A DNA stretch of 64,000 nt, from sequence record NC_041974.1. One strand, written 5' to 3'. The translations under genes and the position numbers were made by a program. The first letter of the stretch is position 1. Each line of letters opens with the position of its first letter. This document shows, in pieces, positions 3,483 through 62,964 of the stretch. The notes below the pieces were generated by a model that was given only the letters and a program-made list of their open reading frames with translations, made no database searches and was not told the origin of the DNA.

Positions 3483-3510
3483 GAGGAGGGGTAGCCCTCC
3501 TCTTATGCCG
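3483..3510 (+). terminator. Hairpin GAGGAGGG-gtag-CCCTCCTC followed by TTATGCCG
   Basis: Perfect 8-bp inverted repeat after the stop at 3474. Confidence 0.7.
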
Positions 3511-3522
3511 TTTGAGGGTAGC

Positions 3523-3747
3523 ATGGCAAAAAAGGAACTCACGATGAAGCGACTTCAGATAGACATCTCTGAACAGGGCTTTAGCAAACTCAATGCACTC
3601 AAGGTGAAAATGGAAACCACTGCCATGGGTAGCGTTGTCAGCCGCGCCTTATCGATTACCGATCGTTTGTTCACCGCCAAGGAGAAAGGCAGTAAGATCC
3701 TGATCGTGGATAAAGATGGTAATGTCACCGAAATCGAATTACTGTAG
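3523..3747 (+). CDS. Ribbon-helix-helix (CopG/Arc-like) DNA-binding protein
   Basis: SD GAGGGT before ATG 3523. Alternating strand KRLQIDIS, helix EQGFSKLNALKVKM, second helix MGSVVSRALSITDRL; pattern read by eye. Confidence 0.6.
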   Translation: MAKKELTMKRLQIDISEQGFSKLNALKVKMETTAMGSVVSRALSITDRLFTAKEKGSKILIVDKDGNVTEIELL

Positions 3748-3755
3748 AGGTTAAC

Positions 3756-3983
3756 ATGGCTTGGTCCAAACGCCGTGCAAAGAAACGCATCATTCACTTA
3801 CGTGGTTTTCATTATCGTGTTCAATCACGTAGTATCGCAATCTGGGAACAGTATCGCGAATATCATCAAAATCGACCATTTGGATCTGGCGTTGGTTTAT
3901 TGATGTTACTTGACCCTGAAACTGGTTGTCCAATAGGAGCTCATCGTGGCCTTAAGCAAAACAAAAATAAAGCGTCGTACTAA
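3756..3983 (+). CDS. Small basic hypothetical protein
   Basis: SD GAGG, 75 aa, co-oriented. Confidence 0.55.
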   Translation: MAWSKRRAKKRIIHLRGFHYRVQSRSIAIWEQYREYHQNRPFGSGVGLLMLLDPETGCPIGAHRGLKQNKNKASY

Positions 3984-4230
3984 TGCGCTGTATAACTACA
4001 AAACGCTGGTTGAACGCATTAGCTATAAATGCATGATAGCCCACATCGATGCTCAGGGTATCAAGCTTGAATTGAACCGCACGGGTTCGTCAATTAAAAG
4101 TGAAGACATTCCTGCTGCAAAAGAAGCCCGTCTTGCATTGAAACGCGAAATCGTCCGTCTGCGGAATATCCAGGGGCGTCGTCGTATCGTGAATGCCGGT
4201 AAGATCAAAGCGGCAATCAGCCAGTATTAA
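3946..4230 (+). CDS. Small basic hypothetical protein
   Basis: SD AGGAG before GTG 3946; followed by a terminator. Confidence 0.65.
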   Translation: MALSKTKIKRRTNALYNYKTLVERISYKCMIAHIDAQGIKLELNRTGSSIKSEDIPAAKEARLALKREIVRLRNIQGRRRIVNAGKIKAAISQY

Positions 4231-4233
4231 TAG

Positions 4234-4263
4234 AAGGGACTTCGGTCCCTTTATTTTTTTTTT
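4234..4263 (+). terminator. Intrinsic terminator (AAGGGAC-ttcg-GTCCCTT + T tract)
   Basis: 7-bp stem, UUCG tetraloop, long T run. Confidence 0.9.
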
Positions 4264-4289
4264 GTCTTGAATAATGAAATTTTTACGCT

Positions 4290-4326
4290 GTAGAAAATCT
4301 TAGACCTATATAACGGCACTGATAGA
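4290..4326 (+). promoter_or_regulatory. Putative early (virion RNAP) promoter, repeat copy 1
   Basis: GTAGAAAATCTTAGACCTATATAACGGCACTGATAGA aligns without gaps to copies at 4896 and 27215; intergenic, upstream of an accessory gene. Confidence 0.7.
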
Positions 4327-4354
4327 GTAATCTAAATTAACTTACGAGGTTATC

Positions 4355-4885
4355 ATGAAAAACACTACTTTTCTAATTGAGACCCTGAAACGTACCTTGG
4401 AAGAGCTGGACCAGGCAACGTTATCAACTGAAGAAAAAATTGAATTAACCACCATGGTTGAGAAAGAACATTTTGCTAAGCTGTTCGGTGTCCGCGCAGA
4501 AGAAACCACTCAGTTAAGTGAGCGCGATTTCTCTAAACTGACCGGTTATCAGTACAACAGTGTTTACGCGGGGTTAGATTTGGTTGGTAATTTTGACTGG
4601 GTGATCACGGCGGATGGCGCAGTCGTAACAAGAGAAATGCCTCATCACGGCAGTAACCATTGGTTGCCACCGCACAGGCAATTTATATTCAGACTGATCG
4701 ATGAAGGTCGTGAAATATTTAATGAAGGCACTAGACTGCTTGTTATCAGAATTGAGAACACCATCACCAAAGAGGTCTTTTCAATTAACTTTGAAGTTGC
4801 TGATATTCAAATCGGCAGTGCGGTTGTTAAAATGGTTGAGCGTTATCTGTTCGATTATTACAGGGTCAGCGTCAAGAAACTGTAA
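4355..4885 (+). CDS. Hypothetical early protein
   Basis: SD GAGG, 176 aa, behind promoter repeat. Confidence 0.75.
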   Translation: MKNTTFLIETLKRTLEELDQATLSTEEKIELTTMVEKEHFAKLFGVRAEETTQLSERDFSKLTGYQYNSVYAGLDLVGNFDWVITADGAVVTREMPHHGSNHWLPPHRQFIFRLIDEGREIFNEGTRLLVIRIENTITKEVFSINFEVADIQIGSAVVKMVERYLFDYYRVSVKKL

Positions 4886-4895
4886 AATATGAGTT

Positions 4896-4932
4896 GCAGA
4901 AAATCTCAGACCTATATGACTGGGGTGATAAA
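4896..4932 (+). promoter_or_regulatory. Putative early promoter, repeat copy 2
   Basis: GCAGAAAATCTCAGACCTATATGACTGGGGTGATAAA. Confidence 0.7.
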
Positions 4933-4988
4933 GAGTAGTGAATACTCTTAACCCCTAACCCAATTAACCTTAAGTATGGAGTAGTATC

Positions 4989-5279
4989 ATGACTGTAACT
5001 TTCTCTCAGCAAATGCAGGTTGTCGAATCTATCGCTGTGATGCAGGAAAAAGCAATGGAACTGCAAGTTGCTACCAAAGCGTGTTACGACGAAGTCACCC
5101 GACTGGCCAACCGACTGGCTGACATCAACGATCCACTCGGCTTTCAGAAAGCCTATGAAGAATATCGTGCCAAGCTGGCAGAAGCGGATGTATTAGCCGA
5201 TGCTACTCGCCTGGCTTACAACATGTCAGACGCTGCACTGAAAACCATCCTGGGTGAAGCTAACCCAACCTTTCATTAA
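4989..5279 (+). CDS. Small helical/coiled-coil hypothetical protein
   Basis: SD GGAG, 96 aa, A/E/K/L-rich. Confidence 0.7.
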   Translation: MTVTFSQQMQVVESIAVMQEKAMELQVATKACYDEVTRLANRLADINDPLGFQKAYEEYRAKLAEADVLADATRLAYNMSDAALKTILGEANPTFH

Positions 5280-5318
5280 TAGTTAATTACTCATCGTCAT
5301 TACGCCTCGGAGAAACTC

Positions 5319-5528
5319 ATGAGCGATTTTATTAGCAACCTGTTCGAAATCGCTATTGCAGTTTCTTCTGTAGTGGCGATGGTTAAATTGATTAAATCTG
5401 ATAATGCCTATATTGCAGAAACAGTTCGTATCATCGATGCCTGCGCTTCTTTACAGGAAGGGCAAGTAATTCAGGGCGAAGTGGTTAACACCAAAGCCCA
5501 CACAACCAACTTATACATCACCCATTAA
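5319..5528 (+). CDS. Small membrane-anchored hypothetical protein
   Basis: SD GGAG; hydrophobic N-terminal stretch LFEIAIAVSSVVAMVKLI. Confidence 0.6.
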   Translation: MSDFISNLFEIAIAVSSVVAMVKLIKSDNAYIAETVRIIDACASLQEGQVIQGEVVNTKAHTTNLYITH

Positions 5529-5550
5529 TCTACTTGTAAGGAATACACCT

Positions 5551-6012
5551 ATGTCAAACTCTATGTTCATCTGCCTGTCACTGTTAGCGGTTATCTCTGT
5601 CTCTGGTGGTATCGCCTTTGCCAAGAGCCTGTCACCGACCCATGCCATGATGACCGCCTTTGCTTACTTACGTGAGCAACTCGGTGATGACGCAGCACAG
5701 TACGAATACGATAAACGCTCACACCTTCTTTGCATGACAAACCTGGTGGAAACTAACTATGCCCTGGTCTGCGGTAAGCACTTTGAACGCGCAGAACAAA
5801 AACGTGCATGGTTAGTTAAGGAAGCAGAAGAGATCCAGCTCACCCCGCGTCAACAACTGATGCTACTGGACTCCTTACTGAACCTGAACACCCGTCCTGA
5901 ACAAGCAAAGAAAATTGTTAAAGTACGTTCAACCAAAGAGATCGTTGACTTGGCTGCGAAGTATGCGAGCGACAACCGTCGTATCGAAGCTCCGCTGGCC
6001 TTGTTCCGCTAA
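5551..6012 (+). CDS. Hypothetical protein with N-terminal signal/TM segment
   Basis: SD AAGGA; MFICLSLLAVISVSGGIAFA. Confidence 0.7.
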   Translation: MSNSMFICLSLLAVISVSGGIAFAKSLSPTHAMMTAFAYLREQLGDDAAQYEYDKRSHLLCMTNLVETNYALVCGKHFERAEQKRAWLVKEAEEIQLTPRQQLMLLDSLLNLNTRPEQAKKIVKVRSTKEIVDLAAKYASDNRRIEAPLALFR

Positions 6013-6046
6013 TGTAAGCTGTAGTGTATTGGTCACCTCATGACCG

Positions 6047-6096
6047 GAGCTCACCCTAACCGGTGGGCTCTTTTTTTTTGTCTTCTTTTTTTTTTT
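6047..6096 (+). terminator. Intrinsic terminator
   Basis: GAGCTCACC...GGTGGGCTC stem followed by two long T runs. Confidence 0.85.
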
Positions 6097-6105
6097 GTTC
6101 GGGGA

Positions 6106-6112
6106 TTATATG
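6106..6112 (+). promoter_or_regulatory. Candidate late promoter core (TTATATG; phiKZ late TATG type)
   Basis: Similar WTATATG motifs at 61466-61472 (+), 30011-30017 (-) and 32632-32638 (-), each intergenic or just upstream of a gene. phiKZ nvRNAP late promoters have a TATG core. Confidence 0.45.
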
Positions 6113-6138
6113 TAGTCCATATTAGCTAAGAGGACATT

Positions 6139-6543
6139 ATGGCAGAGCGTGTAGTTCCAACCATGTCCGTAACCGGGTACGTAACCGGCGTGACTGAAAC
6201 CATTGACCGGATGTTTGCCTACTGGCTGACCGCACAATACTCTCAAACGTATCTTGCGCGCGGTAACATCCACTCCCTTCAATATTTGATCCAGCAGTAT
6301 GACGGTAACCCAGAACGTCTGTGTGATGCGGTGGTGAAAGACCTCAAGAACTATTTTACGGGTCCGTTTGATGCCGCCACGGTTACCTGTAATCCACGTT
6401 ATGCGACCAGTGAGCGTGATGAGAAGTTCTATATGCTGGAGATCGATATCAAAGTCTCTAATGGCGATATCGGTTATGATGTTGGTCGCCGTCTGCTAGA
6501 GATTGAAGACGGTATCTTTAAACGCATTGTAGGTACTCTGTAA
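6139..6543 (+). CDS. Conserved phiKZ-like core protein (gp62 type; possible gp25-like baseplate fold)
   Basis: SD GAGGA, 134 aa, two genes upstream of SbcD as in phiKZ-like phages. Fold call is tentative. Confidence 0.55.
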   Translation: MAERVVPTMSVTGYVTGVTETIDRMFAYWLTAQYSQTYLARGNIHSLQYLIQQYDGNPERLCDAVVKDLKNYFTGPFDAATVTCNPRYATSERDEKFYMLEIDIKVSNGDIGYDVGRRLLEIEDGIFKRIVGTL

Positions 6544-7145
6544 TGGCACAAACCGAACACGATAAAATGATGCACCAACGGGCAGGGTCGATTGAGCGCC
6601 GACTGGCACAGGCCGCCCAGCATGAACGTAATCCCCAGATCCAGGAAGCGGAGTTCACCCGGGTATTCCTGCCGATGTTTGTTGGTGGGGGTGAATACAT
6701 TAATCAGGATGCCTGGGTGGCAGTTGCCGGCTCTGTTAATAATGAAGTCGATGTCTTCCGCGGGCAAGAGTACCTTTATACCCTGCCAGCCTTAGCCATC
6801 CCGATTCGCTCTGAGATCTCCAGTCGTAGCCAAAATGGTCGCATGGGTGATAACTGGATGGGCACAGGCTTAAACGCCGCAGACGATCCAGGCTCAATTG
6901 AGAGCGTGATGTCGATCGATGCCAAGGGTAAGCAGGTTGCGTTAGCCAGTACTGCTGAGGAGCACATGGCACGCTGGGATGAGGTGTTCAAACGTTACGG
7001 GCTGGACTACCGCGTAATCCGTGCTGACCTCCATGAACGTAAAACAGGTCAGAAAGTTAATCCCAACATTATCGATCAATCAGATAAGGCATTAGCGACT
7101 AAACAGGTTGAGCTCGATGACAACGGTGATTACGAAGACTACTAA
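6543..7145 (+). CDS. Conserved phiKZ-like core protein (gp63/64 type)
   Basis: TAATG coupling; position directly upstream of SbcD; acidic C-terminus. Confidence 0.6.
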   Translation: MAQTEHDKMMHQRAGSIERRLAQAAQHERNPQIQEAEFTRVFLPMFVGGGEYINQDAWVAVAGSVNNEVDVFRGQEYLYTLPALAIPIRSEISSRSQNGRMGDNWMGTGLNAADDPGSIESVMSIDAKGKQVALASTAEEHMARWDEVFKRYGLDYRVIRADLHERKTGQKVNPNIIDQSDKALATKQVELDDNGDYEDY

Positions 7146-7155
7146 AAAACCTGGC

Positions 7156-8262
7156 ATGGTACGGATTATTCAGACAGGCGATATTCACCTCTGTCATAAG
7201 CGCACCCCAACGGCGAACATTATCCGTACACTGAACTACATCTTCTATGAAAACGAATCCTTGGCTGAAACCGACCTTATCATCCTTGCCGGGGATGTTT
7301 GGGATACCCTGGTGACCATGCCTAATGACGATGCATTATTAGCTCGTCAATGGATTCGTAAGTTTGTCGAAGATTGCGCATACCACAATGTAATCTTAGA
7401 TGTGTTAGAAGGCACTCCTGATCATGATTGGGAGCAGTCTTCTGAGTTCACCCTCTTTGAAACCAATTGTGAAGTGCGCTACATCAAAACCCTGCAGATT
7501 GTCCGTCACGAGCACTTGGATTTAAATATCCTTTATGTGCCCGATGAATGGCGCCCAACCATCGAAGCGATCTGGGAAGATGTGTGTGTGGCAATGACTG
7601 AAGCTGGACTGGACAAAGTGGATGTCGGGGTGGTGCACGGGGGATTCGATTTTAACTTCCCGCCAGAGTACAACATCAAAGGCCACAGTGCTGAGCGCTT
7701 TAGCAGTATTGTCAAACATGCGGTGTTTGCTAACCACATCCACAAAGCCCAGAGCTTTATGAAAGTGCACGGCCCAGGTTCACCGGATCGATTAGCACAG
7801 GGTGAGGAAGGGGACAAAGGTTACCATCGGGTGGTGATTGATCAGAAGACCGATCAGATGCGTATCCAGTGGATTAAGAACCCACACGCCTGGACCCATA
7901 TCGCAATCAACGTTGCAGATATGTCGGTTGAGGAGATCGTCGCCAAAGCCAAAGCGATCGCAGCACCACTAAGAGCCGGCAGTTATCTGCGTTTTGATAA
8001 CGGTGATCCCTTAGTGGTGAAAGCGGTACTGTGGGCATTGAAAGCAGAAATCCCGCATGTGATATTGGAATACAAAAACAAGAAGCAAGCAGGGATCACG
8101 CAAACGCACCAAACTTATGCCAAGAAGTTTTCTGGCACCCACATTAACCGCAACAATGCCAAAGAGTCGATCGTCGGCTGGTTGCAGGGTAAAGGGTTAA
8201 CGGACGACTCACAGGGTCAGTATTTAAGCGATATCTTACAGCGCGCCATGGCGCTGAAGTAG
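7156..8262 (+). CDS. sbcD: SbcD/Mre11-like metallophosphoesterase nuclease
   Basis: Motifs GDIH, ILAGDVWD, EGTPDHD, VHGG, NHIH, GSPDR. ATG 7156 preferred over TTG 7108. Confidence 0.9.
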   Translation: MVRIIQTGDIHLCHKRTPTANIIRTLNYIFYENESLAETDLIILAGDVWDTLVTMPNDDALLARQWIRKFVEDCAYHNVILDVLEGTPDHDWEQSSEFTLFETNCEVRYIKTLQIVRHEHLDLNILYVPDEWRPTIEAIWEDVCVAMTEAGLDKVDVGVVHGGFDFNFPPEYNIKGHSAERFSSIVKHAVFANHIHKAQSFMKVHGPGSPDRLAQGEEGDKGYHRVVIDQKTDQMRIQWIKNPHAWTHIAINVADMSVEEIVAKAKAIAAPLRAGSYLRFDNGDPLVVKAVLWALKAEIPHVILEYKNKKQAGITQTHQTYAKKFSGTHINRNNAKESIVGWLQGKGLTDDSQGQYLSDILQRAMALK

Positions 8263-8272
8263 TGAGGGTGTT

Positions 8273-9073: not shown

Positions 9074-9136
9074 ATCAACATAACTGCTCTAACTTTATAG
9101 AGCAGTATAACTAATTAGTCCTAAAAGGAGCAACAC

Positions 9137-9907: not shown

Positions 9908-9984
9908 ATAGACAGGACGATGAATTCAGCATAAGTCATTGTCTGGGTTCATCCACAACAGAGGAGGGTGAAAACCCTCCTCTT

Positions 9985-10308
9985 GTGCCGTCCACGGACT
10001 GGGCTATAGCTCACGCTTACTCCCCAGGGTATGGGCGATTCAAACGCCGACATTTCAGGAAGAATACGCGCAAGCGACCCCCACGGCCATGTAAGAATAA
10101 AAGTAAGTTGATGAAGGTGGCTCAGAGTAAGTTGGGTTATGCGATCATGACAGGCAGGGTAATCAGGCAGGCAGTATGTGATGAGTGTGAGGCGGATGAA
10201 CGTATCGAGCCTTTGCAAGTCAATTATGCTAAGCCGTATATCGTGCTGTGGCTTTGTCCACGTTGTCATGCTGACTGGTACCTGACAAATGAGCCGGCGT
10301 ACAGCTGA
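9985..10308 (+). CDS. Degenerate small HNH-type zinc-binding protein
   Basis: AIMTGRVIRQAVCDEC...NYAKPYIVLWLCPRCHADW resembles small phage HNH proteins (CxxC...HHxDYxKPLxVxWLCxxCH), but the HH is replaced by LQ. Start uncertain. Confidence 0.5.
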   Translation: MPSTDWAIAHAYSPGYGRFKRRHFRKNTRKRPPRPCKNKSKLMKVAQSKLGYAIMTGRVIRQAVCDECEADERIEPLQVNYAKPYIVLWLCPRCHADWYLTNEPAYS

Positions 10309-10345
10309 GGGTTTCGGCCCTCCTTTATGATACCAAGAGGTGACA

Positions 10346-10738: not shown

Positions 10739-10843
10739 TTTTTATTGCTGGATGCGGTAAACCCGCTCCAGCCCTTATGCCGCCTGTAATATCGTACATT
10801 ATTCTACTATCTATTAGAGGAACAAATAATCTTAAATATTTAC

Positions 10844-10857
10844 AAGCCTACATTATC
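10844..10857 (+). promoter_or_regulatory. Putative early promoter core AAGCCTACATTATC
   Basis: Near-identical to 15985-15998 (AAGCCTATATTATC) and 34918-34931 (AAACCTACATTATA). Two of the three precede nvRNAP subunit genes. Confidence 0.6.
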
Positions 10858-15586: not shown

Positions 15587-15625
15587 CGGCATAAGGAGAG
15601 GCTACGGCCTCTCCTCTTTCAGAGT
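15587..15625. terminator. Bidirectional terminator between convergent genes, flanked by CGGCATAA
   Basis: AGGAGAGGC-tacg-GCCTCTCCT stem. Confidence 0.8.
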
Positions 15626-15960
15626 CATTTTTTATTTGAGTTGTAGAGATCTCTAATAGATGACAGAAGTGAACTGTTTTCATCTATTAGAAGAATGTCC
15701 GTTGTAATGACATCCCATTTAAAGGGATTCATGATGTTGTTGATTCGCATAGTTAACCAATGCATGTGATAAGGAACGCCGTATTCCAGTAGTAGCATGC
15801 GAAAGTCACCACGTTCTTCGTACTGTTCAAGAGGGGTAGGGGGAGTAAACTTAGTTGCATTCGCCCGAAGCAAATCGAGATGATGCACCAGGACCTGACG
15901 AAAGCCGTGATCTTGAAACAGCTTATCGGTCGGGTGTTTGATTTCGTTGCTGACTCGCAT
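15625..15960 (-). CDS. Small conserved phiKZ-like protein on the opposite strand (possible LysM/gp53-like baseplate fold)
   Basis: 111 aa; GDFRMLLLEYGVPYHMHWLTMRINN pattern; own terminator at about 15600. Fold is tentative. Confidence 0.6.
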   Translation of the reverse strand: MRVSNEIKHPTDKLFQDHGFRQVLVHHLDLLRANATKFTPPTPLEQYEERGDFRMLLLEYGVPYHMHWLTMRINNIMNPFKWDVITTDILLIDENSSLLSSIRDLYNSNKK

Positions 15961-15984
15961 ATGCGTAAATACCTATACTTGTTT

Positions 15985-15998
15985 AAGCCTATATTATC
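15985..15998 (+). promoter_or_regulatory. Putative early promoter core AAGCCTATATTATC
   Basis: Matches 10844 and 34918; about 30 nt upstream of the nvRNAP beta gene. Confidence 0.6.
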
Positions 15999-16030
15999 TC
16001 TTGGCAGTTAGGTTGATAAAAGGAATCATA

Positions 16031-21694: not shown

Positions 21695-21731
21695 AAAGAC
21701 CAGGGGGATTACTCCTTGGTCTTTTATGCTT
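21695..21731 (+). terminator. Intrinsic terminator ending the core operon
   Basis: AAAGACCAGGGG...CCTTGGTCTTT stem, then TTATGCTT and T-rich run. Confidence 0.75.
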
Positions 21732-26507: not shown

Positions 26508-26718
26508 AGTTAACATCGAGCAGGCCAATCGTTATGAGGGGTCTACCGATGATTTGGTCCAGCAAGCTAATGATCGTGGTTTTCTCCAGGGGTTTCGTAT
26601 CACTTCTGGCGAGGACATCGATCCAAGCATTTGGACGCCTGAGAAGATCGAAAAGTTGAAAGCTGCACTTCGACATATTCGTGACTCAGAACAACGCATC
26701 AAAGGTAGCCAGGGGTAA
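26488..26718 (+). CDS. Small hypothetical protein
   Basis: GTG 26488 with SD GAGGGA; followed by hairpin+TTATGCCG. Confidence 0.55.
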   Translation: MDTNPTEVNIEQANRYEGSTDDLVQQANDRGFLQGFRITSGEDIDPSIWTPEKIEKLKAALRHIRDSEQRIKGSQG

Positions 26719-26756
26719 CACCCTGGCTTTATGCCGGTTTAACGAGGACGTGTAAC

Positions 26757-28475: not shown

Positions 28476-28509
28476 AGGCAGGGGGAATACTCTCTGCCTT
28501 TATTTTTTG
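28476..28509 (+). terminator. Intrinsic terminator
   Basis: AGGCAGGGG...CTCTCTGCCT plus T tract. Confidence 0.8.
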
Positions 28510-29554: not shown

Positions 29555-29610
29555 CGGCATATAGGCCCTCCATTACGGAGGGCCTTTTATGACATCTTTT
29601 TTTTTTGGTT
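29555..29610. terminator. Bidirectional terminator at convergent junction
   Basis: CGGCATAT-AGGCCCTCC...GGAGGGCCT-TTTATGAC plus T run. Confidence 0.8.
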
Positions 29611-35807: not shown

Positions 35808-36005
35808 ATGACCACAAACCCGCAGTTTATTTTCGTGGCTCAGAATTCTGATGCTACACACAGCGTAGAGAAACTGGAAGTAGGACGCGATACCGATACC
35901 CAGAAGAACCTCACGGAACTTCGTAAAGGTTTGCCGTTCGACTTCTCGTTTATCATGTCTGAAGAGGCGATCTATCAACTTCGACAGGCAGGGCACATCA
36001 ACTAA
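35808..36005 (+). CDS. Small T5orf172/GIY-YIG-like remnant
   Basis: FIFVAQN...LEVGRDTDTQKNLTELRKGLPF resembles YVY...IKIGxSxxPxxRLxxLxTGxPF without the Tyr/Arg residues. Confidence 0.4.
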   Translation: MTTNPQFIFVAQNSDATHSVEKLEVGRDTDTQKNLTELRKGLPFDFSFIMSEEAIYQLRQAGHIN

Positions 36006-36473: not shown

Positions 36474-36479
36474 ACTCCA

Positions 36480-36506
36480 GGAGAGCTTCGGCTCTCCTTT
36501 TATGCC
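36480..36506 (+). terminator. Hairpin GGAGAGC-ttcg-GCTCTCC + TTTTATGCCC
   Basis: 7-bp stem with UUCG loop. Confidence 0.8.
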
Positions 36507-36522
36507 CATTAAGGAACATGTC

Positions 36523-41676: not shown

Positions 41677-41689
41677 TTGATCATTTGAT

Positions 41690-41739
41690 CAGCATAAGGA
41701 GAGGCCTCGCGCCTCTCCTGTTTATGCCGTCTTTTTTTT
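41690..41739. terminator. Bidirectional terminator with CAGCATAA / TTATGCCG arms
   Basis: AGGAGAGGC-ctcgc-GCCTCTCCT stem, T run. Confidence 0.85.
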
Positions 41740-42243
41740 TTACACTAAAATACCGTTAAAAGCCACCGGGTCATTACCCAGGAACGGGTTGTACCGAACC
41801 ACAGACCCTAATGTGTAATCGTAGTAGATAAAGTCCAAGCATTGCGCACCCTGATAAGTAGTCCATGACTTTGATAGATAGCCATTGCGGTCTAACGCAA
41901 CGTAAGCTGGCCGACTCGATAACGGGGTAAACTTCATCAACACTTGTGGCTGGTTGTTGAGGTTGTTTGTAAATACAGGCAGGGAAGGATGCGCGTGCCT
42001 TGCAATGGAGCACAACCAAGAGTCGTAGGTAAACCACTCTTTATACGACGTGCCGTACATGTTGTTGGATGTGTTCAATGTAGTATTAACATATTTACCG
42101 GCAGTAGCAGACATGCTGGTACTCGCGTTCGCTACCTTCGTATATTTGGCGGCATTGGCCGCAAGCCACGCCTCGAATTGTGCATAGGTCATCTTAGTAC
42201 CTATCTGTGGCTGTGACTTACTGCCCATTAACATCTCTAACAT
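41740..42243 (-). CDS. Putative tail-associated protein, paralog 1
   Basis: Aligns over full length with 42256-42765 (IARHA, RNGY, LDFIYYD, PVxFNGxL). Confidence 0.7.
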   Translation of the reverse strand: MLEMLMGSKSQPQIGTKMTYAQFEAWLAANAAKYTKVANASTSMSATAGKYVNTTLNTSNNMYGTSYKEWFTYDSWLCSIARHAHPSLPVFTNNLNNQPQVLMKFTPLSSRPAYVALDRNGYLSKSWTTYQGAQCLDFIYYDYTLGSVVRYNPFLGNDPVAFNGILV

Positions 42244-42765: not shown

Positions 42766-42906
42766 AACTCCACCTCAAAATAAAATCCCGTTAGCAAGGG
42801 TTCTGGTTCTCTAATACATGACTTATAGGATTTAGCCGGCATAACGGAGCAGGCAACGCCTACTCCTGAATCCTGGTGTGAATAACGGTTGGTCGATTGG
42901 GGTATT

Positions 42907-43884: not shown

Positions 43885-43993
43885 GCATCATCCTTCTAGA
43901 ATGAGTACCTTGACGACCTACTCGCGTCATAGCATTCCAGCCGGCATAAGGGAGTGGATACCCTGACCGTAGCCAAGGTATCCACGTGGTGCG

Positions 43994-50333: not shown

Positions 50334-50335
50334 AT

Positions 50336-50387
50336 CGGCATAAAGGCCTGGCCTTCCTTGCGGAGGGCCAGAGCCTTGCTTATGCCG
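50336..50387. terminator. Bidirectional terminator with exact CGGCATAA...TTATGCCG arms
   Basis: Long stem at a convergent junction; right arm overlaps the TAA of the minus-strand gene. Confidence 0.85.
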
Positions 50388-53337
50388 TTAAGCTTGACTT
50401 CGCTGAGGTATGTTTCAGGAAGGTGATGGAGATGTCTTCTTTCACCGTTAAGGTTTCATCCGACGCCACATCTACCCGTTTCTTGATGGCACACCGCATG
50501 GTGTCATCTAATGCGGTCATGACTTTGATATCACCGTTCACCCCGAGTGCTTTAAACTCGATGTCAACCACATCTGACGTTCGATACGGTTTCAGCGCAT
50601 CAACCAGATCTGTCAGACCAAAGGTTGCCCGGGCAATCACTGCGGCAATCGCTGGACTCACTTTCGCTGACAGGTTGTCACGCAATGAGGTGTTCTTGTA
50701 ACCGTTGTCGGTCATGTAGAAGGTTACGTCAAAACCAATCGCGGCGGAGATCTGACGAGACTCTCGTGCATTGGCAATCACATCGATCAAGCCCAGGGTT
50801 TGTTTCGGTCGTAACGACACCGTGGTCTTCTCAAGCAACTGCCGCTTCACCGTGACCATGTCTTCTGTCACCCAGTCAACCAGATCAGAGATCACATCAG
50901 TGATGTATGTCTTATCCAGCGGGTTACCGGTAAAGTAGTAGACACCATCCAGACCCACCACATCGATCTCACGCACCACCACACGTTCATTAAGCGGGAT
51001 AGGGTTACCTTGCTCATCCGACTTAATGTCACCCACCCGATAACGATAGATGATGTTGTTATCAGCGTCATACATGATGTCGCCTTTGGCGTGCAGGATG
51101 ATCGGTTGGTTGTTGCTGTCAAACACCAGTTGGTTAGTGACCGCATCACGTTGATACACCGTCTCTGCATAACGCCACGGCACATCGACATCATACTTCT
51201 GATACTCGATGTCAGACACCACTGAACGTGACCGCTGATACAGATAGGTCAGGGCTTTGCCCATCACCACATCGTAGGACTGCTCCGTCACCACCACGAA
51301 CTGCTGATCCAGGTAGAAACTCCCCAGCTTCTTATCACTGTCGCTGTACACCACGTCGTTCGGTGATTTGGCCACAGCAATACAGTTTAGCAGGATGAAG
51401 TTCTTTTCCAGTACCGAGCGCAACTTAGACGGCGCATTACCAAACTGACCAAAGGAGGTCAGGATGATCTCGTCCTCATTGGTGATGTCGAGATTACTGT
51501 CAATATCAAACTGCCAGACACGTTCGCGGGTTGCTGTCCGACCGATCATCAAGCCATTGAGGTAGCCGTAGTTGCTTTCCCCTTCCGGCATGAACAGTAA
51601 CTGACACGCCACATCGCTGTCTGCCAGGTCTTTGTAGTAATCACCTGAACTCGTCACCACGGTTGCTCTAAAGCCATTGGTGGTTTTGGTAAAGGTAAAA
51701 CTGTCCGCCACAAGTTCAACACCGATGGAGTTGTTCTCATAGCTGAATACCCGACCTGCTACAGAAGGACGATCCAGATCATAGACCCGAGTGGTAAACG
51801 CATCGTTATTCGCATCCAACACCATGTAGAAAGGTGAGAACATGAACACGTTGTTGTTGACCGTCAAGGCACGACTGTCTAATCCCGCGCCGTTGATCGT
51901 AGCCAGCTCCGCATCGGATACCATGTTGTAGATACCGTTGACCAAGCGGTATAAGGCTGTCGGAGTGATGGTGATGCGATTGCCGTTATCACGCACTGCG
52001 GTATTACTGACTAACTGCAACATCGATGACTGCAGGGTAATAATCCCGGTACCGGCCGGTGTATTGATGCCAGACTTGTTGGTCTGCGGATTCAGTGACC
52101 GGGTCGCATGGTAAATACGTTGCGTCACTGTGTCTTCTGATTTCAATGCCCCGTAGCCTAAATCGACCAGGGTTTGTGAGACCTGCGCTTCAGTAATCGG
52201 TAAGACCGTTTTGTTGGCCGAATAGATCACCGCTTCACGCAACGCTTCAACACTGAGGCCGTTCACCCCACCGCTGACACCGCTGCTGATCGACATGGTC
52301 TTTTCATTAAAGACGGTCAATGGGGTAGAGTACTTATCCAACACCCGATCTTCGTAATTGAAGTCACGGTAGACCGCACTGATCGAAGAAGACTGCAGCG
52401 CCAGCGTTTCGATAACCAGGTTACCTTTACTGGTGTAGACATCTGCCCGCACCTGACGACCCACTGCCAGATTGTTGGAGATGTAGATTTCCGGTAGCAC
52501 AACCTTCACTGAGTCTTCTAACACCTGGGCGACGAAGGTCAGCTTGGTGTTGTCATAGACCAGGTCATCATGGGTGACGTACGCCTCTTCCCACTCATCA
52601 GTCACATTCGCCCGTGTAAAGACACGCAGGTAATAGAACTGGTCACCTTTTAATGGATAGGTATTGCGATACCCACTCATGCTGGTAATCTGACCGTAAT
52701 AAGGCTGGGCTTTGAACTGACGTAAAGGTACCGTGATGTAGAGCAGTTCAACCCCGTTGAAGATCGCAGTCCGCCAGGTTAACTGGTTGGTCTCAACCGT
52801 CAGTAACGGACTGGGTTGCGACACATCGTACACCACCACAAAGCCGCCATGTTTCATCACCCGGATTTCAATCGGATACTCCAGACTGAAGGTGACGTCC
52901 ATCACCGTGATTTCCGTGTTGCGTGGAATCACCATCTTCGAGTAGATGCTGTCGATGTCATCGTTGCCACTGCTGTCGAGCTGCACTGCACGCGCCCGAA
53001 TCTCATCGGCATTGAAAATGAAGTTGGTGGTGATACGTGACGGGGTACAGAAACGGTTCTTGTAATCCTCATCACTCATGTTGCGATACAGATCTTCATA
53101 CGTCCGCGCCATCTTCGGGTAGTACGCCGTATAAAGGTCTTCATGGTTTTGCATCACTGCTGAACCGGTCAGAGCAACCAGCTCAAAAGCAAACATCGCG
53201 GGGTTGGTGGCATTCATGATATCAATCGTGCCATCCATGTTTTGATCTAACAGATCGAGTGTGTAGTCCATCATCAAAGATGGATCATTACGCAGGTCGA
53301 TCATTTTCTGTTTACGTACGTCGATGCTGTCGCTCAT
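50380..53337 (-). CDS. Large virion structural protein, baseplate-wedge-like (phiKZ gp87 type)
   Basis: 985 aa; SGGVNGLSVEALRE resembles the baseplate J/gp6 SGGxDxES motif; synteny. Confidence 0.7.
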   Translation of the reverse strand: MSDSIDVRKQKMIDLRNDPSLMMDYTLDLLDQNMDGTIDIMNATNPAMFAFELVALTGSAVMQNHEDLYTAYYPKMARTYEDLYRNMSDEDYKNRFCTPSRITTNFIFNADEIRARAVQLDSSGNDDIDSIYSKMVIPRNTEITVMDVTFSLEYPIEIRVMKHGGFVVVYDVSQPSPLLTVETNQLTWRTAIFNGVELLYITVPLRQFKAQPYYGQITSMSGYRNTYPLKGDQFYYLRVFTRANVTDEWEEAYVTHDDLVYDNTKLTFVAQVLEDSVKVVLPEIYISNNLAVGRQVRADVYTSKGNLVIETLALQSSSISAVYRDFNYEDRVLDKYSTPLTVFNEKTMSISSGVSGGVNGLSVEALREAVIYSANKTVLPITEAQVSQTLVDLGYGALKSEDTVTQRIYHATRSLNPQTNKSGINTPAGTGIITLQSSMLQLVSNTAVRDNGNRITITPTALYRLVNGIYNMVSDAELATINGAGLDSRALTVNNNVFMFSPFYMVLDANNDAFTTRVYDLDRPSVAGRVFSYENNSIGVELVADSFTFTKTTNGFRATVVTSSGDYYKDLADSDVACQLLFMPEGESNYGYLNGLMIGRTATRERVWQFDIDSNLDITNEDEIILTSFGQFGNAPSKLRSVLEKNFILLNCIAVAKSPNDVVYSDSDKKLGSFYLDQQFVVVTEQSYDVVMGKALTYLYQRSRSVVSDIEYQKYDVDVPWRYAETVYQRDAVTNQLVFDSNNQPIILHAKGDIMYDADNNIIYRYRVGDIKSDEQGNPIPLNERVVVREIDVVGLDGVYYFTGNPLDKTYITDVISDLVDWVTEDMVTVKRQLLEKTTVSLRPKQTLGLIDVIANARESRQISAAIGFDVTFYMTDNGYKNTSLRDNLSAKVSPAIAAVIARATFGLTDLVDALKPYRTSDVVDIEFKALGVNGDIKVMTALDDTMRCAIKKRVDVASDETLTVKEDISITFLKHTSAKSSLTA

Positions 53338-55592: not shown

Positions 55593-55604
55593 GGATCTCG
55601 TTCG

Positions 55605-56498: not shown

Positions 56499-56508
56499 GG
56501 AGTCCGTC

Positions 56509-57048: not shown

Positions 57049-57085
57049 CAGGCCTCAAAATCGGAATGTAGAGGATACGTAAAAA

Positions 57086-58675: not shown

Positions 58676-58693
58676 CCGTCATAAGGCAAAGAG

Positions 58694-60079
58694 ATGTCTT
58701 TACATCAAAAGCTCCTCTCTGCCGGGCTGGAGGCGTTTGACGCGCCTCCGGCTGCTCCGGTAGTAGCGGCAGTAGTACCTGCTCCATTTGATAACAACGC
58801 CCCGGTTAGCGAAGACCCGGAACTGCTTCGTGAAGAGACCGCTGCCCGTTTAGCGCTCGTGTCGATCATCGAAGCGGAGCGTGACGAAGAAGACTCGCGG
58901 TCTGCGGTTTATGAACTGCGTCGTCTGTCTGATGGTTTGGAAGGGTTGATGGTTGAGATTCAAAACGTCAACAACCCAGAAGAACCGACTGAAGACGAAA
59001 TGGCGATGTTGAAAGCCACCGCCCAGCAAGTACGTAAAGAGCTGCTGGAAGATGGTGAGCAAGAACTCGTCATCAATGTCGAAAACGGCATTCTGGTTGG
59101 TTCACAGGAAGGTCTGGCTGATGCCCTCAGTAATGTGGCGAAGAAGATCGGTTTTGCATTAGGTAATGCAGCGAAAGGTTTACTGAGCAAAGGCGAGCAG
59201 GCGAAAGCGCCGTTGTCTTATAACCGTAAACTGGCAGCTGAACTGAAAGCGAAAATCGATAAGCTCGGCACGACTGAATTTGACTTTACCATGCCAGCTG
59301 ATCTGGTCCGTCAGATTCGTGTGAGCGATACCGGTCCGGTTGATGCACTCAAAGCAGTAGCAGACTTCCCGGCAGCACTTGATGCCTGGTATCTGACCCC
59401 TGCTGATGCAGCAATGAACCTGTTTGAAAAACACGCCAACATCGTGCAGGCGATTGCCGGTAGCAAGACTCTCGAAGAGTTCAATACGAATTATGCGAAA
59501 CTGAGCTCACTGGCGCCACCGCTGCCTGCAGGCGCTAAACGCCTTGATCCGATTAACACGCGGGATTATATCTTCGACGTTAATGAACATCACCCAAGTA
59601 TGGGTCGTGTGGCTCGCTACTATTATGTTGCGCGTCCGGATGTGGGTAAAACGCCTGAAGATAAAGCGCTGGATAATGTCATTGCTTTGGCGCAGTATTC
59701 GACCGGGATCTATCCGTTCGATAAGATCTCTAAACGTAAAGCAACTGATGAGCAGGTGAAGTTCAGTGCGGCTGAAGTCAAAGGCTTGCTGGATGACATG
59801 CTGAAAGCGTGTGACGTGGTTGATAAGTACCTTTCACGTCTTGCAGTCGCCAGCACAATGGATAAGCGCTACAACGCTCTGGTTGATTTACTCAATAGCG
59901 ACTTGCGTAAACAAGAGTGGTGTTCCACAGAAGTCAACCGCATGGCACGCGTTGCGTTGATCTCAATGGATGCGTATTATTCATACGGGTTTGCTTATAC
60001 CAGTCGTGCTTACGAACTGATGGACGTGATCGTCAAGTTGGTGAAGAAAGCCGTGTATAAATCTGACCTCAGTAAGTAA
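58694..60079 (+). CDS. Processed head/ejection protein paralog
   Basis: AGLEAFD N-terminus; GSQEGL. Confidence 0.75.
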   Translation: MSLHQKLLSAGLEAFDAPPAAPVVAAVVPAPFDNNAPVSEDPELLREETAARLALVSIIEAERDEEDSRSAVYELRRLSDGLEGLMVEIQNVNNPEEPTEDEMAMLKATAQQVRKELLEDGEQELVINVENGILVGSQEGLADALSNVAKKIGFALGNAAKGLLSKGEQAKAPLSYNRKLAAELKAKIDKLGTTEFDFTMPADLVRQIRVSDTGPVDALKAVADFPAALDAWYLTPADAAMNLFEKHANIVQAIAGSKTLEEFNTNYAKLSSLAPPLPAGAKRLDPINTRDYIFDVNEHHPSMGRVARYYYVARPDVGKTPEDKALDNVIALAQYSTGIYPFDKISKRKATDEQVKFSAAEVKGLLDDMLKACDVVDKYLSRLAVASTMDKRYNALVDLLNSDLRKQEWCSTEVNRMARVALISMDAYYSYGFAYTSRAYELMDVIVKLVKKAVYKSDLSK

Positions 60080-60090
60080 ACGGAGAAAAC

Positions 60091-61461
60091 ATGTCCGCGA
60101 TTAATGACTTTCTATTTACTGCGGGCATGGAGGGGTTTAACGACCCCTCCTCTATACCGCCCGTTGGTATAGTTGTGCCCTTTTTTGGTGTTGAAGAGTT
60201 CGCTGAAGCGGATGCTGAACAATCTGTACGTATGACAGAGATGAACCAGCAAGCTGAAGCAATTCAACGTCTGCAACAAACGCTGGTCTACATCAACGCT
60301 CACCGCCCAACCTTTGACCGTGAGAACGCCGCTGTCGTGCAGCAAGCGCTGGGTGAAGTACAGGTACTGATGCCTGACATGGAAGACCCGGTCACCATCA
60401 TGGGGTCGCTGGAGCATTATACCCCGGCTTACACCAACCACTTGCTTGCGCACGGTATTGAAGGCATTGGTGATAAGATCCTGAGCGTGGTCAAGAAGAT
60501 CATCGAACTCTTGAAGAAAGGTTATGCCTTCTTGAGTAAAGCCATCCAGGCAAAGGGTGTGGTCTTCGGTAAACAGAAGCGCGAACTCGATGAGCTCAAT
60601 GCATGGTTTAAAGATCAACGCAAAAGCAACGATAAACCCGCTACCACCACCGGTAATGAACCTAAGGTTGTTACGGTCACTGCCCCGACCTATCTGTACA
60701 CCGTCGACAGTAACAAACCGTTAGCGGCGGATCGCTTAGCAAGCGAAGTGGCGAAGTACAACAAATTCCTGCAGGCCTTCTCGGTTGATTTCATCCGGGC
60801 GCATATTACCCTGGGTGATCTCTATATTCGCGCGCTGGGCACGCTGGATATTGCCAGTACCAGTAACGAAGAGTTGTTCACCAAGATGTTTAAGGGTCAG
60901 TTTAAATACCAGGCCTCGGGTGCAACGCTGTACACCAAACGCAATGGCGAAATGTGCGATATCGAAACAGTCGGGTTGATTGGTGGGATTGGCTTTAAAG
61001 CCTCCATCGCGAATATCCTGGTCGCACCGCTTGAGATGACCGCAGACGGCTCTAACCAGCGTAAGTTCTTTAAGCAGATGAACGGGCTGTATAACTACAG
61101 TTTTGTCTCCAAAATAAAAATGGATGGCAGTACGGTGGGTAATACCCCAATCTATGCTTGCAGTCTCGCTGACGCTGAGCGGTTGGTGAATCAACTTGAT
61201 ATGCTGACCAACTGGATGATTAACAGTCAGCACGACGAAGAGATCCGTGACTTTAATAAACGGGTGACTGAGTGTGTGGATAAGCTGGCTGATCGTGCTG
61301 GTCGTCTGGGTAATGACCGCAGTGATTTTATCACTACTGTGATCAATGCCTTGTCTGGTATCTCCAGTGGTCTGGAAAATGTGTCTCGTGGCATGAATCA
61401 GCAAACGAACACATTGATCAACAACTTGCGTGAGTACGTTACCAAATCCACGAAAGCGTAA
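60091..61461 (+). CDS. Processed head/ejection protein paralog
   Basis: AGMEGF, GSLE, GIEGIGDKILSVVKKIIELL. Confidence 0.75.
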   Translation: MSAINDFLFTAGMEGFNDPSSIPPVGIVVPFFGVEEFAEADAEQSVRMTEMNQQAEAIQRLQQTLVYINAHRPTFDRENAAVVQQALGEVQVLMPDMEDPVTIMGSLEHYTPAYTNHLLAHGIEGIGDKILSVVKKIIELLKKGYAFLSKAIQAKGVVFGKQKRELDELNAWFKDQRKSNDKPATTTGNEPKVVTVTAPTYLYTVDSNKPLAADRLASEVAKYNKFLQAFSVDFIRAHITLGDLYIRALGTLDIASTSNEELFTKMFKGQFKYQASGATLYTKRNGEMCDIETVGLIGGIGFKASIANILVAPLEMTADGSNQRKFFKQMNGLYNYSFVSKIKMDGSTVGNTPIYACSLADAERLVNQLDMLTNWMINSQHDEEIRDFNKRVTECVDKLADRAGRLGNDRSDFITTVINALSGISSGLENVSRGMNQQTNTLINNLREYVTKSTKA

Positions 61462-61554
61462 ATTATTATATGTGTTAATGGCCCTGCAGGAAACGCGGGG
61501 CCTTATCACAATACGATCGTATTTAATTTCATGAAATTAAGGTAGAGACTCACT

Positions 61555-62910
61555 ATGTCTATTCAAGCATTTTTAAACCTCGGCGCCGAGGCTTTCGAAG
61601 ACGCACCGGTAGTTGAAGAAGCACCGGTTGTGGTTGTTGCACCAGTGCCAGAAGAAGTGATCGAGCTGATTGCCGAGCGTGATGATTCGAACATCGCCCT
61701 GGCCATTGCTCAGGATGCGGCGGCAATGTCTGCTGCCGAGCGTCAGGTGGAAGAGTTTGCTTCCGCAATCGAGCGCGTTGAAAATGTCCAGGCATCAATG
61801 GAACACTTTATCGAAGCGGGCCTGTCACAGAAATCAGCAATGATGCTGCATCGCCAGATCACAACTGTCATGGCATCTGTCGGCAAGGATGGCGCTGCCA
61901 TCGGTGGCGGTCTGGAAAACTTCGACAACGAAGAAGCCAGCATTGCACTGCTGACCGCTGGTCTGGAAGCACTGGATGCCGAGAAAGCCGATCTGTCCTC
62001 CCGTGCCGGTGCATCCATTGCCGGTATCGCTGGTAACATTAAAAGCTTTCTGGGCAACATCAGTACTCAGGCCGGTCGTTATAAACTGCGTGCTGAAGCG
62101 ATCGTTAAATCTGCTGACGGCGCTGAAGCCAAGTCCGGTACTGTTGAAGTAAAAGATAAACACCTGGTTGTAAAAGGTGGCAATCCATCAACTAACCTGA
62201 AAGGCGATCTGGGTAACTTCAGCAAGCTGGTTGGTGCGGCAATCGCTACCTTCATCGAAGGCGATATCGTTAAAGAAGGCAGCGCTCTGGCAAAAGCTGG
62301 CGAGACCATCATTAAAGCGACTACCGCTGATGTGGCAGTGAAAGCTGCAATGGGTGTGAAACACAATCCATTCCCGGGCGCAACCATCGCAGTGCAGGAC
62401 AAAGACACCTTCAGTATCAAACGTACTGAAGTGGTTCTCGGCGGCTATGCGGTATTCGATCTGCAATATAAAGCCACCGGCGGCGAAGGTGCTGAAGCAG
62501 CTGTTGCGCATCTGAATGCACTGAGCAAAAACCGCGTTACTCTTCGTCAGGCTCCAGTTGAAGCTGGTAGCGAGAAAGTATTCTCTGCCACTATGTCTCC
62601 GGCCGATGGCGCAGCACTGGCGAAAGATGTTATCGCAATGCTGGACAACATCACAGCGGTCAATAACCGTAGCCTGGGTGCGGTAAGTGGCGCACTGGCC
62701 CGTCTGGGTACCAGCGCTGTGTTGAAAGGCGCTGTGGCGAAAGACGCAGACAAAGACGTGAAGAAAATTGCTGGCGCCATGGGTAAAACCCTGGTTGGTT
62801 CTATCCAGGCTGTTAACAGTCTGCCACGCGATGCCCTGAGCGCTGCGCTGAAAGTGTCTGATGCTGTACTGAAAGTTGCTAAGAAAGCTGCTGCAGGTCA
62901 AGTAGACTAA
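61555..62910 (+). CDS. Processed head/ejection protein paralog (Ala-rich, strongly biased codons)
   Basis: GAEAFED, SMEHF, GGLENF, AGLEAL. Confidence 0.75.
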   Translation: MSIQAFLNLGAEAFEDAPVVEEAPVVVVAPVPEEVIELIAERDDSNIALAIAQDAAAMSAAERQVEEFASAIERVENVQASMEHFIEAGLSQKSAMMLHRQITTVMASVGKDGAAIGGGLENFDNEEASIALLTAGLEALDAEKADLSSRAGASIAGIAGNIKSFLGNISTQAGRYKLRAEAIVKSADGAEAKSGTVEVKDKHLVVKGGNPSTNLKGDLGNFSKLVGAAIATFIEGDIVKEGSALAKAGETIIKATTADVAVKAAMGVKHNPFPGATIAVQDKDTFSIKRTEVVLGGYAVFDLQYKATGGEGAEAAVAHLNALSKNRVTLRQAPVEAGSEKVFSATMSPADGAALAKDVIAMLDNITAVNNRSLGAVSGALARLGTSAVLKGAVAKDADKDVKKIAGAMGKTLVGSIQAVNSLPRDALSAALKVSDAVLKVAKKAAAGQVD

Positions 62911-62934
62911 TCGAGTAACTTGATAACCTTAGGG

Positions 62935-62964
62935 GGAGAGGGGTTTCCCTCTCCTCTTATACCG
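62935..62964 (+). terminator. Hairpin followed by TTATACCG
   Basis: GGAGAGGG-gttt-CCCTCTCC stem. Confidence 0.7.

Follow-up and report, generated by a model that had tools for sequence, protein, structure and literature searches.

Gene ends in the DNA analysed here are marked by GC-rich hairpins followed directly by the octamer TTATGCCG (the tail), and on the basis of motif homology and position we consider these elements probable intrinsic-type terminators in which the tail takes the place of the U-tract. We favour this reading because in the related phage 201phi2-1 RNA 3' ends fall inside the tail, 7-8 nt past the stem. The signal is real but largely known, as the core finding was published for phiKZ and 201phi2-1 in 2024. 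The stretch under study (the window, 64,000 nt) covers genome positions 186001-250000 of Erwinia phage vB_EamM_Simmy50, a nucleus-forming jumbo phage. Its annotation lists a nuclear shell protein, PhuZ and several split RNAP beta/beta' genes and thus describes a phiKZ-like genome, and a chimallin search linked Simmy50 to phiKZ, 201phi2-1 and Goslar. We found no description of the motif in Erwinia phages in the literature, and a full-text search for TTATGCCG returned as its sole match a primer with no bearing on the motif, in the announcement of a Klebsiella jumbo phage. An Rfam scan of the 64-kb window matched no family.

An earlier note on this DNA had listed exact copies of TTATGCCG at 3503, 10775, 26729, 41722 and 50380 on the plus strand and at 15587, 42837, 43942 and 50336 on the minus strand, as well as seven near-matches beside hairpins. 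All of them were recovered, with the near-match given there at 36499 lying at 36500, and all nine exact copies are located directly 3' of a GC-rich hairpin at a gene end, as claimed. The note's estimate of about two chance occurrences was also sound: 1.71 +/- 1.34 copies are expected, none of 100 dinucleotide shuffles of the window reached nine, and chance was rejected as the source of the copies. The complete Simmy50 genome (271 kb) contains 41 exact copies vs about 8 expected. The genome-wide comparison of intergenic and coding DNA that the note had proposed came out clearly, with 38 of the 41 copies intergenic and hairpin-linked and the other three coding and hairpin-less. The 38 hairpin-linked copies are co-oriented with the upstream gene, and the distance from stop codon to tail is mostly 26-67 nt. 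A set of 61 sites comprises 34 at tandem junctions, 26 that are convergent or antisense and no divergent one, and a gene end always precedes the element; likewise, no hairpin-less copy of TTATGCCG was found in the 18 divergent (promoter-only) junctions. Counting only hairpin-adjacent copies we obtained 32 exact and 41 one-mismatch occurrences, while eight permuted-motif controls gave 0-2 and 7-12, respectively. Gene positions in our scripts came from a greedy longest-ORF model, whose stops match the annotation and whose starts are over-extended; we compared the junction classes visually with the annotation tables. The sites within the window are listed in the table.

Putative terminators in the window (window coordinates; tail position in brackets where given)
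Site	Position	Strand	Remarks
After gp234, 9-bp hairpin + TTATGCCG (3503-3510)	3482..3510	+	-17.7 kcal/mol, tail unpaired
After gp245, hairpin + variant tail TTGTGCCG (9983)	9961..9990	+	variant kept in AH06
After gp247, hairpin + TTATGCCG	10747..10782	+	promoter-like CCTACATTA downstream at 10848
After gp251, convergent junction, TTATGCCG on minus strand only	15587..15614	-	
After helicase gene gp255, 12-bp hairpin + degenerate TTATGCTT (21724), then T-rich DNA	21696..21731	+	
After gp264, hairpin + TTATGCCG	26707..26736	+	next start codon 20 nt on
Bidirectional gp269(+)/gp270(-), minus half, tail ATATGCCG (29555)	29555..29585	-	compensatory C-G to T-A in AH06
Bidirectional gp269(+)/gp270(-), plus half, tail TTATGACA (29587), then T-run	29563..29594	+	
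After gp278, UUCG-loop hairpin + tail TTATGCCC (36500)	36479..36507	+	
Bidirectional gp286(+)/gp287(-), minus half, tail TTATGCTG (41690)	41690..41718	-	
Bidirectional gp286(+)/gp287(-), plus half, TTATGCCG then TCTTTTTTTTTT	41697..41729	+	
After gp289, tandem junction, hairpin + TTATGCCG	42837..42866	-	
After DNA polymerase gene gp290, 14-bp hairpin, 4-nt spacer, TTATGCCG	43942..43985	-	
Bidirectional gp294(+)/gp295(-), minus half, tail TTATGCCG	50336..50376	-	
Bidirectional gp294(+)/gp295(-), plus half, tail TTATGCCG	50344..50387	+	two tails complementary, stem lengthened
After gp303, 10-bp hairpin + variant TTATACCG (62957)	62933..62964	+	identical variant in AH06

The hairpins are diverse in sequence. 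In the 54 sites whose tail has one mismatch or none, stems comprise 6-13 bp, loops mostly 4 nt (UUCG and GAAA loops are present) and spacers 0-3 nt. Folding energies range from -13 to -26 kcal/mol. The 24 nt upstream of the tail show a mean pairwise identity of 37%, with no more than 2 of 1431 pairs at 85% or above. Where stem positions depart from Watson-Crick pairing, they are G·T 10 times and C·A twice, the wobbles lying on the transcribed (sense) strand, and in the orthologous elements of phage AH06 (about 80% identical) the tail is kept and the stem carries compensatory changes. Stem pairing is selected at the RNA level, on the transcribed strand, and the stable nascent-RNA hairpin of a canonical intrinsic terminator is present together with this selection. 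Purines make up 81% of the 5' arm (GGAGGAGG), which leaves a 3' arm rich in C and U (CCUCCUC in Simmy50). At convergent junctions both arms had been said to extend the stem, and our foldings agree: 50334-50389 gives -37.7/-35.1 kcal/mol, its tail pairing with CGGCATAA on the upstream side, 41688-41731 likewise folds with its tail drawn into a longer stem, and paired tails occur at 29555/29587, 41690/41722 and 50336/50380. Minimum-energy stems take up the first T residues of the tail. As stem and loop lengths vary, a MAFFT alignment of 38 sites was not structure-aware, and we used anchored Python scans instead. Because the site set was seeded on the motif, its tail positions give no independent logo; the pyrimidines at +3 and +4 alone lie outside the seed.

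A U-tract is not the usual companion of these hairpins. Within 60 nt of a stop codon there are 93 compact strong hairpins; the tail (one mismatch or none) accompanies 43 of them and a U-tract 11. A T-rich run follows the tail in only 6 of the 43 motif sites, in agreement with the lack of a good poly-T noted earlier for several copies. The tail itself has 3 U in 8 nt, short of the roughly five or more in the 8 nt after the stem that are typical of canonical terminators. A classic hairpin-plus-U-tract scan of the 36-52 kb region yielded 15 sites vs 13.9 expected, with none of the real junction hairpins among them, and the sigma-70 and U-tract scan showed no enrichment and missed the real elements.

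The conserved terminator of phiKZ, defined from 61 ONT-cappable-seq terminators, consists of a stem-loop followed by TTATKYYGT (Putzeys et al. 2024, PMC10914365). Terminator motif A of 201phi2-1 (n=59) resembles it, and a second, co-occurring motif leads to a longer stem (PMC11512511). Several features of the phiKZ type are found in Simmy50, namely a stem-loop followed by the tail, position at gene ends, co-orientation and bidirectionality. We read the eight printed termination coordinates of 201phi2-1 on its genome, and all eight lie inside the tail, at position 6-7. The RNA 3' ends thus fall 7-8 nt past the stem, at the pyrimidine just before the conserved G, with a pyrimidine at -1 in 8/8, G at +1 in 7/8 and G at -10 in 8/8, bearing in mind that ONT-cappable-seq places 3' ends to about 2 nt and reads termination and processing or trimming alike. 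Terminators of this kind from 201phi2-1 also stop host RNA polymerase, as a downstream reporter was reduced in uninfected Pseudomonas. The proposal of a terminator specific to the phage's own RNA polymerases therefore stands in part: the motif match and the 3' ends in the tail speak for a terminator, and, given the reporter result, its use need not be exclusive to phage enzymes.

Judging by homology, the GC-rich hairpin of 6-10 bp would close while the conserved 8 nt (UUAUGCCG) form the RNA stretch still paired to the template, so that the tail would be no separate site. The weak, rU:dA-rich proximal part UUAU would replace the U-tract, and the pyrimidine-then-G step further on may correspond to Y-1 G+1, the portion of the consensus pause signal at the downstream fork; with both in place, the polymerase would stall where the hairpin can dislodge it. 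Between convergent genes a single hairpin with one tail per strand would serve both directions. This explanation leaves the use of TATG, over any A/U-rich word, unaccounted for. Alternatively, the phage polymerases may themselves recognise the tail as a stop word of defined sequence, in which case the same four bases would mark starts and stops, an idea to which we give a small chance. If it were true, a terminated polymerase could pass directly to re-initiation at tandem junctions.

The presence of TATG also raises the question of initiation, as the late promoter of phiKZ has a TATG core with the G as +1 (PMC4666361, PMC12809450). In a composite element the hairpin would end the upstream transcript and TATG in the tail would restart the non-virion polymerase for the next gene. 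The nvRNAP cannot initiate without TATG, which it recognises on the non-template strand, a co-directional gene follows 34 of the 61 sites with start codons 15-130 nt away, and in the literature TATG alone is insufficient for a phiKZ late promoter, 'other determinants' still being sought. However, 26 of the 61 sites face a convergent gene or lie antisense, lacking a co-directional downstream gene, and a promoter there would therefore give only antisense RNA. The octamer is absent from all 18 divergent junctions, and a hairpin accompanies each of the 38 intergenic exact copies. The base following TATG is A or T in 151 of 240 hairpin-less non-coding occurrences vs C in 57 of 69 hairpin-linked ones (CCG). 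Published work saw no conserved bases after TATG in late promoters. The model late promoter p119L is A/T-rich upstream, has no hairpin and reads TATGTAG. Moreover, a separate promoter-like motif, CCTAYATTA, lies downstream of several tails. The terminator-coupled late promoter of the earlier note is thus disfavoured by the convergent sites, the empty divergent junctions, the TATG context and p119L, and we regard it as quite unlikely. A stand-alone late promoter was rejected, since tails occur at sites with no following gene and in none of the 18 divergent junctions.

It is unlikely, though less so, that the hairpin with UUAUGCCG is a mark on the RNA, such as a processing site, a 3'-protection module or a site for a phage protein (e.g. 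in nuclear mRNA export), in which case the mapped 3' ends would arise post-transcriptionally. Selection of pairing on the transcribed strand suits such a mark, as does the retention of the tail as a specific word, and not a composition, in phages of five host genera, and 3'-end mapping cannot separate termination from processing. Yet the 3' ends lie inside the conserved word, 7-8 nt past the stem, which leaves the mature RNA without the invariant G and thus fits a DNA signal read by the polymerase better than a site on the finished RNA; the pyrimidines conserved at +3 and +4 even lie beyond the end of the RNA. The same 201phi2-1 elements also lower the reporter in uninfected Pseudomonas, where there is no phage protein. 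Nothing requires the RNA-processing, 3'-protection or export-tag option. A DNA-level repeat with no part in transcription, be it a mobile palindrome of the REP type, a target for recombination or homing or a signal for replication or packaging, is very improbable indeed. A short palindromic unit in about 60-100 intergenic copies would be in line with it, and a few hairpins are near-identical (e.g. genome positions 154223 and 251694), but the 8-nt tail alone is shared among unrelated stem sequences, orientation tracks the upstream gene, G·U wobbles are confined to the sense strand, and RNA 3' ends map to the motif in the relative 201phi2-1. This reading is close to refuted, and the REP-like repeat was rejected: the copies do not share the sequence of the palindrome (37% mean identity).

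Returning to the terminator, conservation in related phages, suggested earlier as a check, was readily seen: strong hairpins have the tail next to them more often than expected in phiKZ, 201phi2-1, Goslar, Proteus phage 10, Eowyn and AH06, with 4-9 sites each vs a background of about 0.2. Enrichment is weak in Ralstonia phage RSF1, and scans for hairpin-adjacent tails found none in Bacillus phage AgentSmith or in Erwinia phage phiEa21-4, which presumably relies on the host RNA polymerase. Phages of Pseudomonas, Erwinia, Escherichia, Klebsiella and Proteus have the phiKZ terminator word in common, and its retention across five host genera points to a constraint from the shared phage transcription machinery, not from the host. 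In practice the motif can guide the annotation of transcription units in Agricanvirus and in further nucleus-forming jumbo phages of enterobacteria, on which standard U-tract finders fail, and the Y-1 G+1 step at the 201phi2-1 3' ends provides a testable idea for U-tract-less termination by non-canonical polymerases.

Compared with known systems, the likeness to the phiKZ late promoter amounts to the four bases TATG, the promoter being A/T-rich and hairpin-less. With the terminators of phiKZ and 201phi2-1 the Simmy50 elements share a GC-rich stem-loop followed by TTAT-K-Y-Y-G, an intergenic position after gene ends, bidirectionality at convergent pairs, an upstream complement that extends the stem at some sites, and their occurrence in phages that have chimallin, PhuZ and two multisubunit RNA polymerases. 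The Simmy50 tail varies less, with exact TTATGCCG at 38 sites, and its stems have the opposite polarity: in phiKZ, 201phi2-1 and Goslar the 5' arm is rich in C and the 3' arm in G, the pattern of the published logo, which Simmy50 does not follow and that in our judgement describes Pseudomonas phages and does not define the terminator class. Owing to this reversal the G at -10 is lost (C in 39 of 54 sites). The consensus elemental pause of multisubunit RNA polymerases comprises G-10 and Y-1 G+1 (PMC12288461); positions 7 and 8 of the tail are still C and G, so the idea of a pause turns in Simmy50 only on the Y-1 G+1 step, of a consensus that was defined on cellular polymerases and may not hold for phiKZ-type enzymes. 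Unlike a canonical intrinsic terminator, the element has no U-tract, only UUAU followed by a conserved G/C-rich GCCG, and its tail is a fixed word and not a composition, so that a hairpin-plus-U-tract scanner misses the sites. Like a canonical intrinsic terminator, it combines a nascent-RNA hairpin with A/U-rich first four residues after the stem, and the 201phi2-1 elements add a 3' end 7-8 nt past the stem and function with a bacterial polymerase.

Erwinia phage vB_EamM_Simmy50 (NC_041974.1) belongs to the genus Agricanvirus and has a genome of 271,088 bp, in which the window corresponds to positions 186001-250000 with identical sequence. Its annotation includes a nuclear shell protein, PhuZ (a tubulin) and a number of split genes for RNA polymerase beta/beta', and it is therefore a phiKZ-like nucleus-forming jumbo phage with its own multisubunit RNA polymerases. 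Matches to sigma-70-like promoters are depleted between window positions 36000 and 52000 (6 versus 16.9 ± 4.2 expected), which fits a genome not transcribed by the host polymerase. The annotated 43-aa gene gp252 overlaps gp251 on the opposite strand, at the 5' end of the latter and inside a divergent promoter region, and may be a spurious gene call.

All nine exact copies of TTATGCCG that the earlier note had reported for the window were recovered, each after a gene end and preceded by a GC-rich hairpin. Only 1.71 copies are expected, none of 100 shuffled sequences reached nine, and the seven near-matches proved real as well. Extending the count to the complete genome yielded 41 exact copies (genome size alone predicts about 8), of which 38 are intergenic and located directly 3' of a hairpin, while the other 3 fall within coding sequence and lack a hairpin. 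With strict filtering for folding we found 32 exact and 41 one-mismatch copies of this tail, as we call the 8-mer and its variants, adjacent to hairpins, compared to 0-2 exact and 7-12 one-mismatch copies for eight permutations of the motif. This confirms a signal far beyond chance. Among 93 compact, stable hairpins situated ≤60 nt from a stop codon, 43 have a tail with zero or one mismatch, 8 a tail with two mismatches and 11 an ordinary U-tract. The phage therefore uses both kinds of terminator, with about 11 U-tract versus 43-51 tail sites after genes. A conventional hairpin plus U-tract scan of the 36-52 kb region gave no more sites than shuffled sequence and detected none of the junction hairpins. 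Some tails are directly followed by T runs, which could serve as a back-up U-tract or form the upstream portion of the promoter that follows.

Coordinates of individual features in Simmy50 and, where indicated, AH06
Feature	Coordinates	Strand	Remark
Convergent pairs of tails	window 29555/29587, 41690/41722, 50336/50380	both	separate tail on each strand
Stems with compensatory changes in AH06	window 29555; genome 264325		examples
Inverted hairpin core	window 50336-50387; AH06 locus L008, ~2511-2562		CCTTCCTTGCGGAGGG in Simmy50, CCCTCCGCAAGGAAGG in AH06
T runs directly after tails	window 41730-41741, 29595-29607; genome 75712, 119032		TCTTTTTTTTTT
Complete hairpin with TTATGCCG outside the window	genome 11330-11365	-	antisense between + strand genes gp8 and gp9
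Ordinary hairpin plus U-tract terminators (pair of sites)	window 6047-6079 and 28476-28509		T9 run after gp240; hybrid terminator TTATTTTTTG after gp267
CCTAYATTA(C/T)	window 2665, 10848, 12413, 15989, 34922	+
gp252	15880-16011	+
gp251	15625-15960	-

The 54 well-folded Simmy50 sites have stems of 6-13 bp, a loop of 4 nt in 32 cases (UUCG and GAAA occurring five times each) and a spacer of 0-3 nt between stem and tail. The 5' arm consists of 81% purines; genome-wide, 5' arms resemble Shine-Dalgarno sequences (GGAGG, GAGGAGG) and 3' arms resemble CCUCC. As the stem sequences are mutually unrelated (mean pairwise identity 37%, with ≥85% in 2 of 1431 pairs), the element is a shared signal rather than a copied repeat. 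Departures from Watson-Crick pairing in the stems comprise ten G·T and two C·A, a bias to be expected from selection for pairing on the transcribed strand, i.e. in RNA. The site set was seeded with the 8-mer itself; beyond this seed, counted after the conserved G at tail position 8, a pyrimidine is present at +3 in 49 and at +4 in 48 of the 54 sites.

Regarding the position relative to genes, analyzed for 61 sites genome-wide, the tail mostly starts 26-67 nt past the stop codon of a co-oriented gene. The next gene is co-directional at 34 sites, 26 sites either face a convergent gene or are themselves antisense, and none of the 61 sites is located in a divergent junction. In convergent pairs the two tails are complementary, so that the stem becomes longer in a full-length RNA. 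One complete element is located antisense; in phiKZ the antisense share of terminators is 9% (PMC10914365).

In phiKZ, 133 terminators were mapped by ONT-cappable-seq (Putzeys et al. 2024, PMC10914365). For 201phi2-1 the same group described a motif A (n=59) strongly resembling the phiKZ motif and a second motif whose co-occurrence makes the stem longer; the eight terminators tested also function in uninfected P. chlororaphis (PMC11512511). Since TTATGCCG is one instance of TTATKYYG, the earlier note had rediscovered the published phiKZ-type motif in another genus; our literature search found no paper describing it in Erwinia phages. We located the eight termination coordinates printed in the main text of the 201phi2-1 paper on NC_010821.1, and all eight fall within a tail on the plus strand, the arrangement being hairpin-(C)TTTATGC[C]G. 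The RNA ends with a pyrimidine, at tail position 7 in all cases but one (position 6), followed by G in seven of eight cases and with G at -10 in all eight; given a mapping resolution of ~2 nt (PMC11512511), the safe statement is tail position 6-8. These ends lie 7-8 nt past the stem, the same distance as in bacterial intrinsic terminators, and sit on the G-10 / Y-1 G+1 pattern of the elemental pause of multisubunit polymerases (PMC12288461). By homology, transcripts of Simmy50 are expected to terminate at ...UUAUGC(C); the C7-G8 step is kept, but position -10 is C, not G.

The tail also contains TATG, the core of phiKZ late promoters, in which G is +1 and which is necessary but not sufficient (PMC4666361), and the earlier note had listed a terminator-coupled late promoter among its options. 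However, the model late promoter p119L of phiKZ (TATGTAG) has an A/T-rich upstream region and no hairpin, and the 8-mer is found in 0 of 18 divergent junctions of Simmy50, where TATGs are embedded in A/T-rich context. Of 69 non-coding TATGs that have a hairpin close upstream, 57 show C as the next base (CCG in 35), whereas A or T comes next in 151 of the 240 that lack one. Because hairpin-linked and hairpin-less TATGs thus form two populations and 26 sites have no downstream gene in the facing direction, we consider a promoter role unlikely, although re-initiation may take place at tandem junctions. The proposed terminator function is supported.

A second recurrent motif, CCTAYATTA(C/T), occurs genome-wide in 23 copies on the plus and 1 on the minus strand. 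It is located just before genes and in divergent junctions with A/T-rich DNA upstream, often 20-25 nt past a terminator tail, and probably represents the core of early promoters read by the virion RNA polymerase. This assignment is by analogy, as early promoters of phiKZ and 201phi2-1 are reported to be AT-rich.

In the related Erwinia phage AH06 (~80% identical) the tail is kept at orthologous junctions and stems show compensatory changes; at one convergent pair the hairpin core is inverted, with both flanking tails kept. We surveyed loci of ~23-50 kb per phage, mostly around the chimallin gene. Next to strong hairpins the tail is enriched, with 4-9 sites per phage versus ~0.2 expected, in seven phages: phiKZ, 201phi2-1, Goslar (E. 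coli), Proteus phage 10, Klebsiella phage Eowyn, AH06 and Simmy50. Enrichment is weak in the sampled locus of Ralstonia phage RSF1, and no tail was found in those of Bacillus phage AgentSmith and Erwinia phage phiEa21-4, the latter presumably dependent on the host RNA polymerase. The AgentSmith locus (MW749006.1 79979-121352) carries a homologue of chimallin (25% identity, 68% query coverage) together with a tubulin-like gene and split genes for RNA polymerase, and uses U-tract terminators without the TTATGCCG tail.

In hand are an RNA-level hairpin at gene ends with a conserved 8-nt word and, in 201phi2-1, RNA 3' ends inside this word. In intrinsic termination generally, forward translocation is expected to prevail over hybrid shearing when the distal hybrid is G/C-rich. 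The 8-nt word would make up the RNA-DNA hybrid within the terminating complex: its proximal part, UUAU, would pair weakly, and the polymerase would stall at the C-G step, allowing the hairpin to release it. At late promoters TATG is bound by a non-template-strand pocket (PMC12809450); we speculate that this pocket also engages TATG during elongation, which would explain a fixed TATG over any A/U-rich word.

Added here are the cross-genus conservation of the tail, its separation from late-promoter TATGs and the placement of published 3' ends on the Y-1 G+1 step within it. The Simmy50 element is the Agricanvirus representative of the already published phiKZ-type terminators, from which it differs by a nearly invariant tail and a reversed stem polarity, the 5' arm being C-rich in phiKZ, 201phi2-1 and Goslar and the opposite in Agricanvirus.
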